A DNA stretch of 34,111 nt from Parasitella parasitica NRRL 2501. Its lineage: Eukaryota > Fungi > Mucoromycota. The stretch lies in the NCBI GenBank assembly GCA_025201805.1, contig MU619368.1:12346-46456 (forward strand), read 5' to 3'. The notes beneath the pieces are model-generated. The model did no database searches. It saw only the letters and a program-made list of their open reading frames with translations, and was not told where the DNA came from. Below are positions 10,999 to 16,983 of this stretch, in pieces; positions within the stretch are counted from its first letter, which is position 1; every line of letters starts with the position of its first letter. Made by a program: the position numbers and the translations under genes.

Positions 10999-11790
10999 AT
11001 GAGGTAAACCTAAAGACTCAATCATCCATCCATCAAAGGAATGAATGCATCCATCAGATAGAACGATATATCCATATATCATAATCATATTGGGATGCAA
11101 TTGGTGTCATGATTAGTTGAATTAACACATTTCAATGTTTGTAGTAAAGTCAGCGCTTCTGCCGTCAGAGAACTTGTCAACCAAATTCAGGCCGCCTCTG
11201 CTGAAAAGCAACGCAAGTTTGTTGAAACCATCGAACTTCAAATTGGTTTGAAGAACTACGATCCCCAACGTGATAAGCGTTTCTCTGGTACCATCAAGCT
11301 CCCCAACGTTGCTCGTCCCCGTATGACCGTCTGTGTTCTCGGTGACGCTTTCCACTGTGATCAAGCCAAGAGTGCCGGTATGGAATTCCAATCCGTTGAC
11401 GATCTCAAGAAGCTCAACAAGAACAAGAAGCTCATCAAGAAGCTCGCCAAGAAGTACGATGCTTTCCTTGCTTCCGAAGCTTTGATCAAGCAAATTCCTC
11501 GTCTTTTGGGTCCTGGTCTCCACAAGGTCGGTAAGTTCCCTACTCCCGTCTCTCACAACGACTCCTTGACCGATAAGGCCAACGAAATTCGTGCCACCAT
11601 CAAGTTCCAGTTGAAGAAGGTTCTCTGTCTTGGTGTTGCTATTGGCCACGTTGGTATGACCGAAGATGAATTGATCTCCAACATCATGTTGTCTGTCAAC
11701 TTCCTCGTTTCCTTGTTGAAGAAGCACTGGCAAAACGTCAAGTCTTTGTACTTGAAGTCTTCCATGGGTAAGCCTTACCGTCTCTTCTAA
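10999..11790 (+). CDS. RPL10A: 60S ribosomal protein uL1 (L10a / yeast L1), 216 aa, 2 exons
   Basis: 5-nt first coding exon 10999-11003 (ATGAG), intron 11004-11144, exon 11145-11790. MSKVSAS...[26 protein letters not shown]...[11 protein letters not shown]. Strong high-expression codon bias. Confidence 0.97.
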
Positions 11791-13360
11791 GATGCCTACA
11801 TCTTTTCTTTTTGTTTTCTAGTATTTCAATCATGATCTCTTCATAGAATGTGTGTTATGCTATCAAAACAGAACCTATTTCTGACGGTCCACCAAGGTTT
11901 CTAATTCGAAATCATTTGGGAGCTATCATGACTTATTCATATAAAGTATCATCATTGTCATACTAATAAAAGACATTCAAAAATTAAGGGCTTGAAGTTT
12001 TTGCTTTGGAAGAAATGTTATCTGGATTGATCGTTCGAAAAATAGTTGAGAAAAATTAATAGTTTATAATAGTTTTATAACATGTAACTGATACAGATGA
12101 ATTCAAAATATATTCAAGATGTCAAGAAAGCATGGAGGATTGGATCAAAGTCTTTCATGTAAGCCTAAACGTGTTGTACATGGCGACGTTTTAATATATT
12201 AAACGAAAATGTCTTGGGAAATGAGAAGAACCATTGTAGCCACTTTATGCAAAATGTAGCTTAATAACTGGCCATAGTCTTTAAGTATTTCTATAAGATT
12301 CGAGGATTTTGCGTCGAAATGACATCTAAAAAGGATAAAGCTCCCTTTATCCTTAAGTTATATTTATCAAAACCTTACATAATACACGTTTAGGTATTAG
12401 AGTTTTGTTTCAGCTATGTTTCAAGCCCTTGTTTGTAGCTGTATCTGCATTTCTCATAGAAAAAAACTATTTTTTGACCAATTTTTGGGAGATTTCAAAA
12501 TTATGTCGAGCATAAGGCTGGAAGATCCTAAAAATCAATAATTTACAAAATCGGTTGTACCTTTACCAAATCTCGATGTTTTATTGATCGGTAAAACGAA
12601 TTGAGTGGTATTAATACTATCAAATGAATGTGAATATATACTATTCGTTAATCTCATTATGTGTGAAAATTTGAATACATATCAAAAAAATTATTAAAAA
12701 AAAAAAGTATATGATATTCGCATATGTGATAAACATCATTTTTTGTCAGACTATAAAGAAACTTAAATTATGGCTCTTTGTGCTACACTACGTCAAAATG
12801 ACTGCAGCAAGTCGATTATGCATGGATTGAATCATGTTGAAAGCCCTTTACTCTGAATCGATTCAGTATAATATTTCGTTCCTGTAACAGTTTATAGTAT
12901 CAATGGGGCTTGGATTTGCTTGTATTTTTAGTTGTAATGAGTCTCATGCTATTTCTGTACAATTGCGAGCTTCTTCGTGAGCAGTAGATATTGAAATCAA
13001 ATCATAAACTTGGCTCTCCAGTATATGTGTTATCTTGGTACAAAAACTAATGATTTATTCTGCTGAAACATAGAAGATTTTATTACTTCGATGCAAGAGT
13101 CAATACAATGACATTGAAAACTCAGAAATGTATGGAAATAGATCAATAATGCATTATTTTCTGTAAAATAAACGATATATGGAGTAATTAAGCAATATAT
13201 TTTTTAGTCTGAAACTTTGCAAAGTACGACATGAACGAGTCTGCGGAGAGGCATACCGGTGTTGATGCAGATGCAAACTAACGTTACGTCTGTGACGTTT
13301 GATACCTGGCTTAATTTATGAGTTTTTCTTCTACTTTTCGTCTACTATTCAAGATATCAA

Positions 13361-15991
13361 ATGCTTAAGGTACCGAAAAACCCAGGCTTAGCTCGTTGTC
13401 ATGGTTACCACAAGACGTCGATACGATTATATCACATTGATCAACATTTAAGGCGGCATGTAGCGAGACCGAGAGTGCCAATCATAGCAAACTCAGCAGT
13501 AATAACAGCACCAGTATTGCAACATCAACAACGTTCAATATCCATTATACCCACCGTTGCTCGAGTAGCATTCTCAGCTGTGAGATTGCCGTTGTTTCTT
13601 GCAGGCACTGCTGTGGCAGGAGCAACTGTTGCGTCTAATAAGTTACAGGGCAAGTACATGGCTTTGATAGCAAATCTCGAGATATATTCTCATCTTTCTC
13701 TAGATTTAGCAGATATGGGGTCCACGTTTGTGAACGATGCTAAAAGTATATTAAATAGCGTTGGTGAAAGTATACAAGATATAGATATTCAAATACCCGA
13801 AATGAACATCAAGCTGTCGGATTTAGTGAGCGATATTATGGCTGCTGCGAGAGATAAGACACAATCCATCAACCACATTTTTAACTCGACATTTCCAAAG
13901 CGTGAAGAAAATCATTCATCGTCAGAGCAGATAGAACAATCGACTGTGCCGATAACTGACACAAACAAGGAATTGCATGATTTGAAGCAGCAAATCATTG
14001 AGGAACAAGAGGAGGAGGATGAAGTGGACTATGAAGCTCTGGCGAAAGATGCAGCAATAAGGATGAAACACCAAGATCACCAGTTTATTTTATTGTGCCG
14101 AAAATTTGCAAGTATTCGAGCTACGTTGATGTCTATTCAGCATCGAGTAATCCCTAATGTTCCATCCATTGTCATGATTGGATCAAGGCATAACCACCAA
14201 GTCGTCATTGAATCTATACTCGGTCAATCCTTTGCACTTGCAGACACTTTTTATGAAAACAACAGAACCTTGGAATTTTATTTCATCAATAATTCAGATT
14301 TGAAGGAGCCAAAAATACAAATCAATGGACAAGAGACGTTAATTTCTGTCGCGGAAGCAGAGCAACTTGTACAGAAACTGATCTCTGAAGACCAAGATGC
14401 AATTCAGATCTCCATTTACGGGCCAGATGTGCCCTACCTCAACCTTTACGATATACCCGAGGATAACCGTGAATTGTGCGAGAAATATATTGGACATGAT
14501 CTCAATACGGTAATCATGGCAGTATACGACACAACAGTACCCTCATCTGAAAGCAGGACGTCAAAACTATGCGAGAAATATGATCCTTTAGGGAGAAGAA
14601 CAGTAGGAATATTGACCAAGAGTCATCATCCTCCACAAGAGTCAACAGTACCATCATCTGAAGACCAAGAGGAGCAAGGGAATTCTGTCTTAAGCAAAGA
14701 ATCAACCATCCCAGCCTCATCTGTCGTTGGCAATTACCGTCCACCGCTGAGCCTTGGCTATATCGATATGACGCACGAAGCTACCGATATGGAAAAGGAG
14801 AAACGACTCTTGCGCCACCATATTTTTGGTATCGTTGAGCAATCCATGGGTCGATCTATTTACAACATTGCTGATTCCATCCAGAATGAATTGGAGGAGA
14901 CCAGCTACCTTTTCAAGGTGATTTACAATGATCATACAATGACAGCAGCCTCTTATTTGACAGACTCTATGGATGAACTAAAGCGTGGATTTAAGCAATT
15001 TGCCTCCTCATTGGGAAAACCGCAATTGCGAGCAGAGGTGCGAAATCTATTAGAGCAAAATGTACTGAATGTATGTGCCGAACAATATTGGTCTGATGCA
15101 AAAATTTTGGATCTAGCGAAAGCAGACGCTGACGAGTTTTACTGGCTGTACAAAATGGACTTGGCATCAGCCGCTATCACAAAAAGTGGCATTGGCCGCA
15201 TCACAACCCAACTCGTCATTGATGTGATAATAAACAACATGCAGCATCTAGTTAAAATGGATCCATTTCAGCACCATCCTAGAGTTCAGAAGCAAATTGT
15301 GGATTTAACAGGCGATATGCTGAGGCAGAGGTTTTTGGCCACGAGTGATCAAGTAGAAAACACAATTAAGCCATACAAATATGAGGTTGAGGTCACTGAT
15401 GAAGAGTGGAAAGATGGCGTGAAAAGAACCATCAAACTCTTGGAAAAGGAATTAGCTATGTGCGAGGATATGCTTTGGATGCTGAAAAGGAACATTGGAA
15501 GGAAAAGACTGCGAAGTGCTATTAAACGAGTTTTGAATGAAGAAAAAGTACATCTTGTGGAAGAAGATGCCGAACAACCACATCGCTTTCTTGAGAAGGC
15601 AAAAGAAGCCTTGTTTTTGCAAGATCGTGCCATGATTATTAAGTACCGACTGGCTGCTTTGAAAAGTAGGCAGTGCAAAACCTCTGACAACAAACAGTAT
15701 TGCCCTGAGGCTTTTTTGAACATTATCGCAGAGAAATTAACGTATACAGCCGTCATGTTTATCCAAGTGGAATTGTTGAATGATTTTTTTTTCAATTTCC
15801 CATTGGAAGCCATTGACGATCGCATTGTCCATCCAATGTCAATGACCCAGATTGACAAATTTGCTAAAGAAAATCCATCAGTCCAAAAGCATCTTATTCT
15901 GCAAGATCGAAAAATGAAACTGGAAGAGGTGATGGACATGCTCAAATACCTAGTAAAAAGACATGGTATTGATCCGCCCAGTAAATACTAG
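13361..15991 (+). CDS. MGM1-like: Mgm1/Msp1/OPA1-like mitochondrial dynamin-related protein with a degenerate, predicted inactive GTPase domain (876 aa unspliced; 858 aa if the GC-AG intron 13650-13703 is removed)
   Basis: Arg-rich presequence and TM segment (RLPLFLAGTAVAGATVAS). Mgm1-type scaffold (PSIVMIGS, LCEKY, DPLGRRTVGILTK, PLSLGYI) and a conserved-looking stalk/paddle/GED (VENTIKPYKYEVEV, CPEAFLNIIAEKL, FAKENPSVQKHLILQDRKMKLE). Motifs G1-G4 are all substituted. Confidence 0.9.
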   Translation: MLKVPKNPGLARCHGYHKTSIRLYHIDQHLRRHVARPRVPIIANSAVITAPVLQHQQRSISIIPTVARVAFSAVRLPLFLAGTAVAGATVASNKLQGKYMALIANLEIYSHLSLDLADMGSTFVNDAKSILNSVGESIQDIDIQIPEMNIKLSDLVSDIMAAARDKTQSINHIFNSTFPKREENHSSSEQIEQSTVPITDTNKELHDLKQQIIEEQEEEDEVDYEALAKDAAIRMKHQDHQFILLCRKFASIRATLMSIQHRVIPNVPSIVMIGSRHNHQVVIESILGQSFALADTFYENNRTLEFYFINNSDLKEPKIQINGQETLISVAEAEQLVQKLISEDQDAIQISIYGPDVPYLNLYDIPEDNRELCEKYIGHDLNTVIMAVYDTTVPSSESRTSKLCEKYDPLGRRTVGILTKSHHPPQESTVPSSEDQEEQGNSVLSKESTIPASSVVGNYRPPLSLGYIDMTHEATDMEKEKRLLRHHIFGIVEQSMGRSIYNIADSIQNELEETSYLFKVIYNDHTMTAASYLTDSMDELKRGFKQFASSLGKPQLRAEVRNLLEQNVLNVCAEQYWSDAKILDLAKADADEFYWLYKMDLASAAITKSGIGRITTQLVIDVIINNMQHLVKMDPFQHHPRVQKQIVDLTGDMLRQRFLATSDQVENTIKPYKYEVEVTDEEWKDGVKRTIKLLEKELAMCEDMLWMLKRNIGRKRLRSAIKRVLNEEKVHLVEEDAEQPHRFLEKAKEALFLQDRAMIIKYRLAALKSRQCKTSDNKQYCPEAFLNIIAEKLTYTAVMFIQVELLNDFFFNFPLEAIDDRIVHPMSMTQIDKFAKENPSVQKHLILQDRKMKLEEVMDMLKYLVKRHGIDPPSKY

Positions 15992-16983
15992 CAATCTAAT
16001 TGACTATAGATAGCACCTTGTAATTTACTAATATACTTGAATAAAGACTATTTGGATACTAGTTATCCGATCAAATTGCCATTCCTGAGAATCTTGATCT
16101 TGATCTTTTTGACTTTTGTCGCGCGTATCTCGTTACACACAAACAACAATTTGATTTCATCTTACTAAGGTGCGTAAAACTATTTACCGAGGCAATATCG
16201 AGGTAAAATACGAGAATGATATTAAAAAAAACGTTAGAAGACAACTTTTCCATTAATTGCATGTTTACCGACATGCCAATATATTTCACTACATATGCAT
16301 ATATGTAGAGTTTCTTTGCATAAATGCAAACTGCTATAAATATCTGAATAACGAGTAAGGCAAGGATGGGATTTTCTTGGCAAATACAGGATAGACAGCA
16401 TTAGACATGTCGCCAAAACGTATTGCCTGATAGTACTGCATTAATGTTACTAAAAAATCTAAATGGCAATGGAAAGTTACACATTAGATGAGCCACGCCA
16501 CGTATACTGTGACTAATAAGCTCATCTGGCACAAGACTGCACTACCATTACTTTTGACTAATATTCTATTTATCCTTATGGCTATAATGGAGATCAATAG
16601 TAGAATAGATCTCCCTAATGGGTCCTATATAATTTTCCAGTTTTGAACGCATCCAGTGTAAACTTAAACACAATTGGCTTTTTATACTGTCATAGAGTTT
16701 CATTTTCGTACTAGTTGATTTTATTTCTATTTTTGGGAGTATTGGCGACTGTGTAATGCAAATGTGGGCATCTCGATAGCCGAAGTGTAAGGATAGTAAA
16801 ACGTTATTTGATTTGTGTCACTGAATAGAATTATCATATGTATACGATTTGATTGAGAACATTAAATATTTTTTATCGCAAAGAGTAGTAGATAGTAGTA
16901 GCAGTGGGGGTAAAATTGTACATTTTCGATGGTTGTGCTAGGATATATATTTACAATGGGAATCCTGACAGCAACTTTATGAT

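Follow-up and report, generated by a model that had tools for sequence, protein, structure and literature searches.

An Mgm1 paralogue of Mucorales fungi without GTP-binding motifs and without the second hydrophobic segment

The stretch of contig MU619368.1 analysed here (34,111 nt, referred to as the window, in which all coordinates are given) comes from the mould Parasitella parasitica NRRL 2501, a relative of Mucor, and contains a functional, transcribed paralogue of the mitochondrial dynamin Mgm1 that has lost its GTP-binding motifs and its cleavage segment, while the membrane anchor, the BSE, the stalk, the paddle and the GED are under strong purifying selection. With the motifs lost, the fold predicted to be kept and the gene both selected and expressed, the product, here called pseudo-Mgm1, qualifies as a pseudoGTPase. 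It may serve as a non-catalytic, permanently anchored Mgm1-type subunit which co-assembles with canonical Mgm1, a proposal that is regarded as having about an even chance of being correct.

The protein belongs to the Mgm1/OPA1 branch of the dynamin superfamily, as indicated by homology in sequence and fold and by a tree in which it nests among the Mgm1 proteins of Mucoromycotina. In a phmmer search of PDB sequences, amino acids 239-864 matched Mgm1 of Chaetomium thermophilum (6rzt/6ql4) with an E-value of 1.7e-91, and the match to yeast Mgm1 (6jsj) reached 3e-84. The Pfam family LIS_MGM1 (PF24550) was recognized at 3.6e-23, and the match to Dynamin_N was marginal (1.2e-6, 29.1 bits versus a cut-off of 27). 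Across stalk, paddle and GED, 52-68% of the residues are identical to canonical Mgm1 of the same genome. Among database proteins, P0001 (P. parasitica, 858 aa) matched best; it equals the translated open reading frame (ORF) minus 18 residues just past the transmembrane (TM) segment. An AlphaFold2 model of P0001, built from a 40-sequence alignment, has a mean predicted local distance difference test score (pLDDT) of 72.7: stalk, paddle and GED exceed 90, the G domain is folded with strands alternating with helices (68-88), and disorder is predicted for the N-terminus, for the linker and for the insert of 37 residues that follows G4. With this model as query, Foldseek placed Mgm1 structures first (E 1e-34 to 1e-28), followed at a distance by Drp1, OPA1 and dynamin. 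A presequence-like N-terminus, a TM anchor and a preserved stalk, paddle and GED had been noted in an earlier reading of the DNA (the preliminary description), the last three being borne out by the alignments, the Pfam match, the column conservation and the substitution rates.

All four GTPase motifs are indeed erased, as the same description had claimed from the letters of the sequence; the existence of the ORF and all motif coordinates quoted there proved exact. When pseudo-Mgm1 is aligned to C. thermophilum Mgm1, the G1 string carries a gap (GSRHN-HQV), ENNRTL stands opposite ITRRPI, DIPE opposite DLPG and followed by a gap, and TKSH opposite TKMD, and the motif strings also face the canonical motifs in the alignment to the canonical copy of the same genome (see Table 1). 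The same loss of G1 to G4 is found in all orthologues, in which G4 is not conserved but reads TSSA, IKSP, VKGS, TKHE, TEGE, AATK or TAAK and differs in nearly every genus, while the P-loop region measures 5 to 11 residues. Since the P-loop varies in both length and sequence, no alternative nucleotide site is conserved, and variability of this kind between genera is what would be expected if no nucleotide were bound. An enzyme that still binds or hydrolyses nucleotides through non-canonical residues would be consistent with the predicted retention of the G fold and with purifying selection on the G core at a ratio of nonsynonymous to synonymous rates (dN/dS, omega) of 0.09-0.20. However, such residual activity is very improbable in a protein which lacks the GK[ST] sequence, the switch I Thr, the Gly of DxxG, the Asp of G4 and the switch II loop, and whose remaining P-loop and G4 positions vary as described.

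The same degenerate motifs occur in Mucor velutinosus, M. atramentarius, M. plumbeus, M. ambiguus, M. bainieri and M. lusitanicus, in a second Parasitella assembly, in Blakeslea, Choanephora, Benjaminiella and Cokeromyces, and in several environmental contigs. The word-based homologue searches recover only close members of this pseudo-clade, and the observed distribution is therefore a lower bound, e.g., with regard to Rhizopus, Phycomyces and Lichtheimia. The gene for ribosomal protein uL1 (L10a) lies upstream of the pseudo-copy in the Parasitella window, in the second Parasitella assembly and in Cokeromyces, which identifies the pseudo-copies as positional orthologues. A short protein attributed to Rhizopus arrhizus (P0296, KAG1065084.1, 231 aa, from an 856-bp contig) falls into a cluster of at least 90% identity with Mucor pseudo-Mgm1 proteins, and either stems from contamination of the Rhizopus assembly or is the sole indication of the gene in that genus.

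Values of dN/dS were calculated after Nei and Gojobori for exon 2 in six species pairs with dS of 0.5-1.6, at which high values omega is approximate, and exon by exon for the canonical gene in the same Parasitella pair (dS ~0.7 for both genes; Table 2). Purifying selection acts on the whole protein; the G domain, although released from constraint approximately 12-fold, is still far from evolving neutrally. This is paralleled by the fate of those columns that are at least 93% invariant in 29 canonical Mgm1 proteins from chytrids to Dikarya, which here stand in for experimentally defined interface residues: the pseudo-clade has kept only 31 of 122 in the G domain (for the other domains, see Table 1). 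Both measures agree with the expectation voiced beforehand of purifying selection on the stalk and relaxed G motifs: the orthologues are intact, and selection is strongest on stalk, paddle and GED and relaxed on the G domain. Many of the replacements in the G domain are fixed throughout the clade, among them Q276R, A285S, H289Q, A391T and D394P, which points to a new constraint on the dead domain rather than drift.

Transcription and splicing of the gene are evident from a transcript contig of 2636 nt, which corresponds to positions 13352-13648 joined to 13703-16017 without any mismatch, skipping 54 nt. It was assembled from one public RNA run (X1, the sole run containing the sequence), and expression was accordingly judged from contigs at one locus. 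The flanks of the transcript, 13181-13307 and 16102-16600, have zero cover. The k-mer depth of the contig is 128, compared to 2 for a neighbouring contig, which suggests appreciable expression, k-mer depth being a rough measure. The preliminary description, which had called for such an RNA-seq check, had regarded the 2.6-kb ORF as uninterrupted; this is correct for the DNA, but not for the mRNA, from which an in-frame intron of 54 nt is spliced out, so that the mature protein comprises 858 rather than 876 amino acids. The in-frame state of the intron is unique to this genome and is shared neither by Mucor nor by the second Parasitella assembly. Retention of the intron would add 18 residues (GKYMALIANLEIYSHLSL) immediately after the TM anchor; the lone transcript contig represents the spliced form only. 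A decaying pseudogene or an annotation artefact, as might be suspected from the missing catalytic motifs and from the faster evolution of the protein compared to the canonical copy, is already contradicted and hardly credible: intact ORFs are present in more than 10 species from at least three families, omega for the whole of exon 2 is far below neutrality, synteny is conserved and the transcript is spliced. The young pseudogene that had been named beforehand as the outcome speaking against a dedicated protein is refuted by the intact, selected orthologues and the spliced transcript.

Table 1. Positions of the pseudo-Mgm1 gene, its transcript and the encoded domains and motifs in the window.
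Feature	Position	Strand	Remarks
ORF	13361..15991	+	2631 nt, 876 codons, uninterrupted in DNA
Spliced transcript contig	13352..16017	+	RNA run X1; 5' end cut by Illumina adapter; 3' end 26 nt beyond stop codon
Exon 1	13361..13649	+	Start codon, Arg/Lys-rich presequence, TM anchor
TM anchor LPLFLAGTAVAGATVASNKLQ (aa 76-96)	13586..13648	+	Homologous to first TM segment (TM1) of canonical Mgm1; kept in pseudo-clade models including N-terminus
Intron	13650..13703	+	54 nt, in frame, GC-AG (GCAAGT...TCTCTAG); joint 13648/13703 with 1-nt ambiguity
Exon 2 to stop	13704..15991	+	Intermembrane space (IMS) linker, BSE, dead G domain, stalk, paddle, GED
Degenerate G domain (aa 263-478 of 876-codon ORF)	14147..14794	+	Fold predicted retained, pLDDT 68-88
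G1/P-loop remnant GSRHNHQV (aa 274-281)	14180..14203	+	Versus GSQSSGKS: one residue shorter; without second Gly, Lys and Ser/Thr
G2/switch I remnant NNRTL	14258..14272	+	Versus VTRRP; catalytic Thr replaced
G3 remnant DIPE	14450..14461	+	Versus DLPG; Gly to Glu, then 15-residue deletion of switch II loop
G4 remnant TKSH	14615..14626	+	Versus TKMD; specificity Asp gone
Acidic/Ser-rich insert after G4	14627..14737	+	Predicted disordered (pLDDT < 50, P0001 405-441); inside fastest-evolving segment tested (aa 423-478)
BSE helix 2 and stalk helices	14795..15403	+	46/65 canonical-invariant columns kept; pLDDT > 90
Paddle/lipid-interacting stalk (LIS_MGM1, aa 682-774)	15404..15682	+	12/13 canonical-invariant columns kept
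SRQCKTSDNKQYCPE, two paddle cysteines and flanks	15665..15709	+	C754 and C763 (P0001 numbering); invariant in all 40 aligned Mgm1/pseudo-Mgm1 sequences
C-terminal stalk helix/GED/BSE helix 3	15683..15958	+	18/21 canonical-invariant columns kept

Table 2. Values of dN/dS for segments of pseudo-Mgm1 and of canonical Mgm1.
Segment	Pseudo-Mgm1, six pairs	Pseudo-Mgm1, Parasitella pair	Canonical Mgm1, Parasitella pair
Whole exon 2	0.05-0.11	0.114	
IMS linker	0.05-0.14	0.134	
BSE1	0-0.05	0.053	
G core (aa 263-422)	0.09-0.20	0.20	0.016
Insert after G4 (aa 423-478)	0.18-0.36	0.363	
Stalk	0.013-0.053	0.053	0.003
Paddle	0.02-0.08	0.040	0.037
GED	0.01-0.07	0.063	0.023

The second deviation from canonical Mgm1 concerns the region between the N-terminus and the G domain, which was scanned for Kyte-Doolittle (KD) hydrophobicity in 17 canonical Mgm1 proteins (from Mucorales, Umbelopsis, Endogonales, Glomeromycota, Mortierella and Penicillium) and in nine models of the pseudo-clade. 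All 17 canonical proteins contain TM1 and an Ala-rich second hydrophobic segment approximately 65 residues before the G domain, which in the canonical Mgm1 of this genome reads AAAAAVAAAAGF and which we take, from what is known of yeast Mgm1, to correspond to the rhomboid (Pcp1) cleavage region. In eight of the nine pseudo-clade models, the scan detected TM1 and no second segment. The remaining model, that of M. bainieri, is doubtful at its N-terminus, and TM1 was not detected in it. The suspicion raised earlier that the protein lacks this segment was thus well founded, its single TM segment ahead of the G domain facing two hydrophobic segments in the canonical paralogue. The site corresponding to the second segment is polar and acidic in the pseudo-clade, and because only TM1 remains, the protein is probably an uncleavable, permanently anchored "long-form-only" Mgm1. 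The pseudo-clade TM1 (R-L-P-L-F-L-A-G-T-A-V-A-G-A-T-V-A) shares the motif R-x-P-x4-AG with its canonical counterpart, and no clear difference in hydrophobicity was seen between the two (KD values of ~1.3-1.7 in both, several rows having been mis-picked by the pattern). The first 60 amino acids carry a net charge of about +9 with one acidic residue, as read directly from the sequence.

A second, canonical MGM1, which the preliminary description had proposed to look for, was found elsewhere in the genome when the assembly containing the window (32.8 Mb in 450 contigs) was searched in all six frames. It is the one other Mgm1 locus in the assembly, located on contig C115 with the motifs GSQSSGKS, VTRRP, DLPG and TKMD intact; its pieces include MVTRRPIEL, later TKMD and then AVMFIQVELLNEFFF, and its database model is P0018 (930 aa). 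The canonical gene contains three introns, of which intron 1 (GT-AG, 51 nt) occupies the identical codon position and phase as in the pseudo-Mgm1 gene, and introns 2 and 3 are missing from the pseudo-copy. This points to a duplication at the DNA level, after which the pseudo-copy lost these two introns. An origin as retrogene was rejected because intron 1 is common to both genes. The duplication that gave rise to the pseudo-copy took place within the Mucorales. Both genes reside on one contig of the second Parasitella assembly (LN725615.1, ~64 kb apart) and on one scaffold of Cokeromyces (JAIWNH010000002.1, ~585 kb apart), an arrangement that hints at duplication within a chromosome and not of the whole genome. 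In either relative, the canonical copy is followed by a CK_II_beta gene.

The pseudo-copies form a fully supported clade in a maximum likelihood tree (LG+C20 PMSF, 45 rows), with a stem of 1.7 substitutions per site placed inside the Mucorales and Umbelopsis part of the canonical Mgm1 tree, and with internal branches 2-2.6 times as long as the matching canonical ones. In approximately unbiased (AU) tests on a 24-row set (LG+G4), a position as sister to the canonical clade of Mucor, Rhizopus, Pilobolus, Choanephora and Benjaminiella was not rejected (p 0.53), and an origin before the Umbelopsis split was rejected (p 0.013). The placement is tentative, being affected by long branches. The two public assemblies of P. 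parasitica differ by a dS of ~0.7 in both the pseudo-copy and canonical MGM1 and share 84% and 96% amino acid identity in the pseudo-copy and the canonical protein, respectively, a divergence far above within-species expectation.

Why both a long and a short form of Mgm1 or OPA1 are needed, and what the long form contributes apart from GTPase activity, is a long-standing question. According to an evolutionary review, inner-membrane fusion in yeast requires both the long (l-Mgm1) and the short form (s-Mgm1), of which s-Mgm1 alone must be active as a GTPase (PMC11885689, citing DeVay 2009, Zick 2009). In the mechanism considered for the preferred reading, pseudo-Mgm1 would be taken up by mitochondria and halted in the inner membrane by its TM segment, and it could neither be cut to a short form nor, as far as its motifs tell, bind or hydrolyse GTP. 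It would then represent a hard-wired "l-Mgm1", i.e., an anchored subunit without catalytic function of its own, which may associate with active (mainly short) canonical Mgm1 via the conserved stalk interfaces and the cardiolipin-binding paddle. In this way it may serve as a tether or nucleation point for Mgm1 lattices at the inner or crista membrane, leaving GTP-driven remodelling entirely to the canonical partner; the surface of the retained, constrained G/BSE module would probably be used for structural purposes or for docking, and not for catalysis. It had been proposed at the outset that the duplication split the roles of the two isoforms between two genes. Of this idea, a membrane-anchored pseudo-dynamin paralogue that is probably restricted to the long form stands, but the partition is not reciprocal, because the canonical paralogue keeps both the TM anchor and the cleavage segment and can presumably still make l- and s-forms.

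Several points weigh against the preferred reading. A separate supplier of the long form is not obviously needed when the canonical copy retains its own TM anchor, and a pure anchor role would not account for purifying selection acting on a dead G domain. In addition, a G-dead Mgm1-like gene of Nadsonia keeps its second hydrophobic segment, which indicates that inactivation of the G motifs need not go along with loss of the cleavage segment. The stalk of pseudo-Mgm1 evolves at a dN/dS approximately 20 times that of the canonical stalk, and 19 of the 65 invariant stalk columns are changed, so that the assembly interfaces may have been re-specialized towards self-assembly. Finally, a complex with canonical Mgm1, whose modelling had been recommended, scored in the band that the tool rates as weak support. 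A stalk-stalk heterodimer (canonical 511-918 with pseudo-Mgm1 461-852) reached an ipSAE of 0.55 versus 0.01 for the best control, with three runs in agreement and a partner pLDDT of 81. In the calibration, the mark was reached by 51 of 78 solved complexes and by 2 of 108 mismatched pairs; at scores of 0.60 or below, where only 5 of the 78 solved complexes passed, lay all four passing mismatches (of 180). The score is compatible with binding but is not counted as evidence for it, because an Mgm1 dimer has already been solved and the pass may reflect memory of that structure.

The changes in the stalk are also the main argument for a self-assembling static scaffold, in which pseudo-Mgm1 would form a homo-oligomeric lattice on the IMS side of the inner or crista membrane and stabilize cristae without canonical Mgm1, functionally similar to Mmc1. 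The conserved stalk, paddle and GED would suit such a lattice, the alteration of 29% of the canonical-invariant stalk columns together with the raised stalk dN/dS would fit interfaces re-tuned to be self-specific, and there is a precedent for a GTPase-dead scaffold of the dynamin-related proteins in fungal mitochondria (bioRxiv 10.1101/2023.10.03.560745; review PMC13530016). However, most interface-bearing stalk columns are still identical to those of canonical Mgm1 and the heterodimer prediction was not rejected, and this arrangement is therefore judged unlikely, if worth consideration. A role as negative regulator, i.e., a subunit that co-polymerizes with canonical Mgm1, caps or poisons assemblies for want of a G interface and thereby lowers inner-membrane fusion in a dominant-negative-like manner, perhaps in dimorphic growth, anaerobiosis or parasitic host fusion, starts from the observation that the motifs of the G-dimer interface (switch I, switch II and G4) are destroyed while the stalk is kept. 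The separate gene with its own promoter would allow independent regulation, and the weak heterodimer support fits as well, yet the k-mer depth suggests substantial expression in ordinary culture (again a rough measure from one RNA data set), and strong purifying selection sustained across several families is at least as well explained by a constitutive structural role; an inhibitor is regarded as unlikely. Returning to the anchored, co-assembling subunit, its more ambitious version would be a two-subunit machine of the Mucorales for inner-membrane fusion and cristae, consisting of a GTPase-dead, rhomboid-resistant "l-Mgm1" encoded by its own gene and the active canonical Mgm1, possibly recurrent in Umbelopsis; this is offered tentatively, as a possibility that is more doubtful than probable. 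If true, it would amount to a natural proof of a purely structural role of the long form, and the Umbelopsis case would make the solution a recurrent one.

Pseudo-Mgm1 shares with the canonical proteins (S. cerevisiae Mgm1, S. pombe Msp1 and C. thermophilum Mgm1; PDB 6QL4, 6RZT, 6JSJ) the order of presequence, TM1, IMS linker, BSE, G fold, stalk, paddle with two invariant cysteines and GED. It differs from them in lacking G1 to G4, switch II and the second segment, so that no s-form is expected, in being encoded by a separate gene rather than representing an isoform, and in evolving 2-2.6 times faster at the protein level after its long stem. Its expected permanent anchoring resembles that of l-Mgm1, whose GTPase activity is dispensable for fusion. 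The anchored L-OPA1 of animals likewise cooperates with a soluble form, S-OPA1, and has a similar stalk and paddle (Foldseek matches 8eew and 8ct1), but L-OPA1 requires its own GTPase activity for fusion, the OPA1 isoforms derive from one gene by splicing and proteolysis, and the identity of pseudo-Mgm1 to OPA1 structures in the fold alignments is only ~12%. The closest functional parallel in kind is Mmc1 of S. pombe (Kumar et al., bioRxiv 10.1101/2023.10.03.560745; Curr Biol 2024), also a member of the dynamin superfamily at the fungal inner membrane which has lost its GTP-binding motifs, and which has been described as a DRP-like (dynamin-related protein-like) pseudoenzyme that works with MICOS and is proposed to be a static scaffold. 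Mmc1 is BDLP/mitofusin-like, with no Pfam match, two C-terminal TM segments and a location on the matrix side, whereas pseudo-Mgm1 shows a single N-terminal TM segment, a body predicted to face the IMS, a non-hydrophobic C-terminus and Mgm1-type domains. Membership in the Mmc1 family is ruled out by topology and lineage; the origin of pseudo-Mgm1 is independent of Mmc1 and, as far as seen, confined to the Mucorales.

No description of a GTPase-dead Mgm1 paralogue was found in the searchable literature (full text, including Mgm1 in Mucorales and pseudoGTPases). A 2026 review on cristae names Mmc1 as the sole GTPase-dead dynamin-related protein and does not include such a paralogue (PMC13530016), and the 2024 evolutionary review describes none either (PMC11885689). 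Public annotations list the pseudo-Mgm1 proteins as "hypothetical", "GED domain-containing", "mitochondrial dynamin GTPase" or "Msp1", the latter two of which are misleading. The protein constitutes a second, independently evolved dynamin-family pseudoenzyme of the fungal inner membrane, after Mmc1. Evolution appears to have run a separation-of-function experiment on the two forms by keeping a gene with anchor, stalk and paddle only under selection across several families of the Mucorales, and the orthologues in genetically tractable Mucor species offer a system in which a non-catalytic anchored subunit, co-polymerization and the constraint on the G domain may be studied.

Two further ORFs at the locus should be mentioned. 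One at 11248-11790 (+) encodes ribosomal protein uL1/L10a and is the upstream neighbour of the pseudo-Mgm1 gene in the window. An antisense ORF of 198 aa with a TTG start at 15349-15945 (-), within the GED-coding region, is without any support and probably a mechanical by-product.

Degenerate G domains were also encountered in Mgm1-like genes outside the pseudo-clade. A very divergent gene of Umbelopsis nana (P0289, L026:8001-10448, with the environmental relatives P0171 and P0288) reads GPHA---HT at G1, LMVLDG at G3 and VVVDV at G4, shows a single TM1-like segment but lacks the Ala-rich one, and sits on a stem of 2.6-4.7 substitutions per site at a locus without uL1 synteny. A position as sister to Umbelopsis' own Mgm1 was not rejected by the AU test (p 0.50), and the Umbelopsis copy possibly represents an independent duplication of the Umbelopsis MGM1 gene. 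The gene of Nadsonia fulvescens mentioned above (L027:2722-5547) is an intact Mgm1-homologous ORF of ~912 aa with GAKEEDQRE at G1, DLPI at G3 and TQID at G4; it keeps TM1 together with the second hydrophobic segment, and its annotated partial model P0157 misses the N-terminus. Two more Mgm1-like models, P0219 from Schizophyllum amplum (GSQSSGKG, no DLPG, TKMG) and P0243 from Podospora appendiculata (without G1 to G3, TKMD kept), may be either gene-model errors or further degenerate copies.

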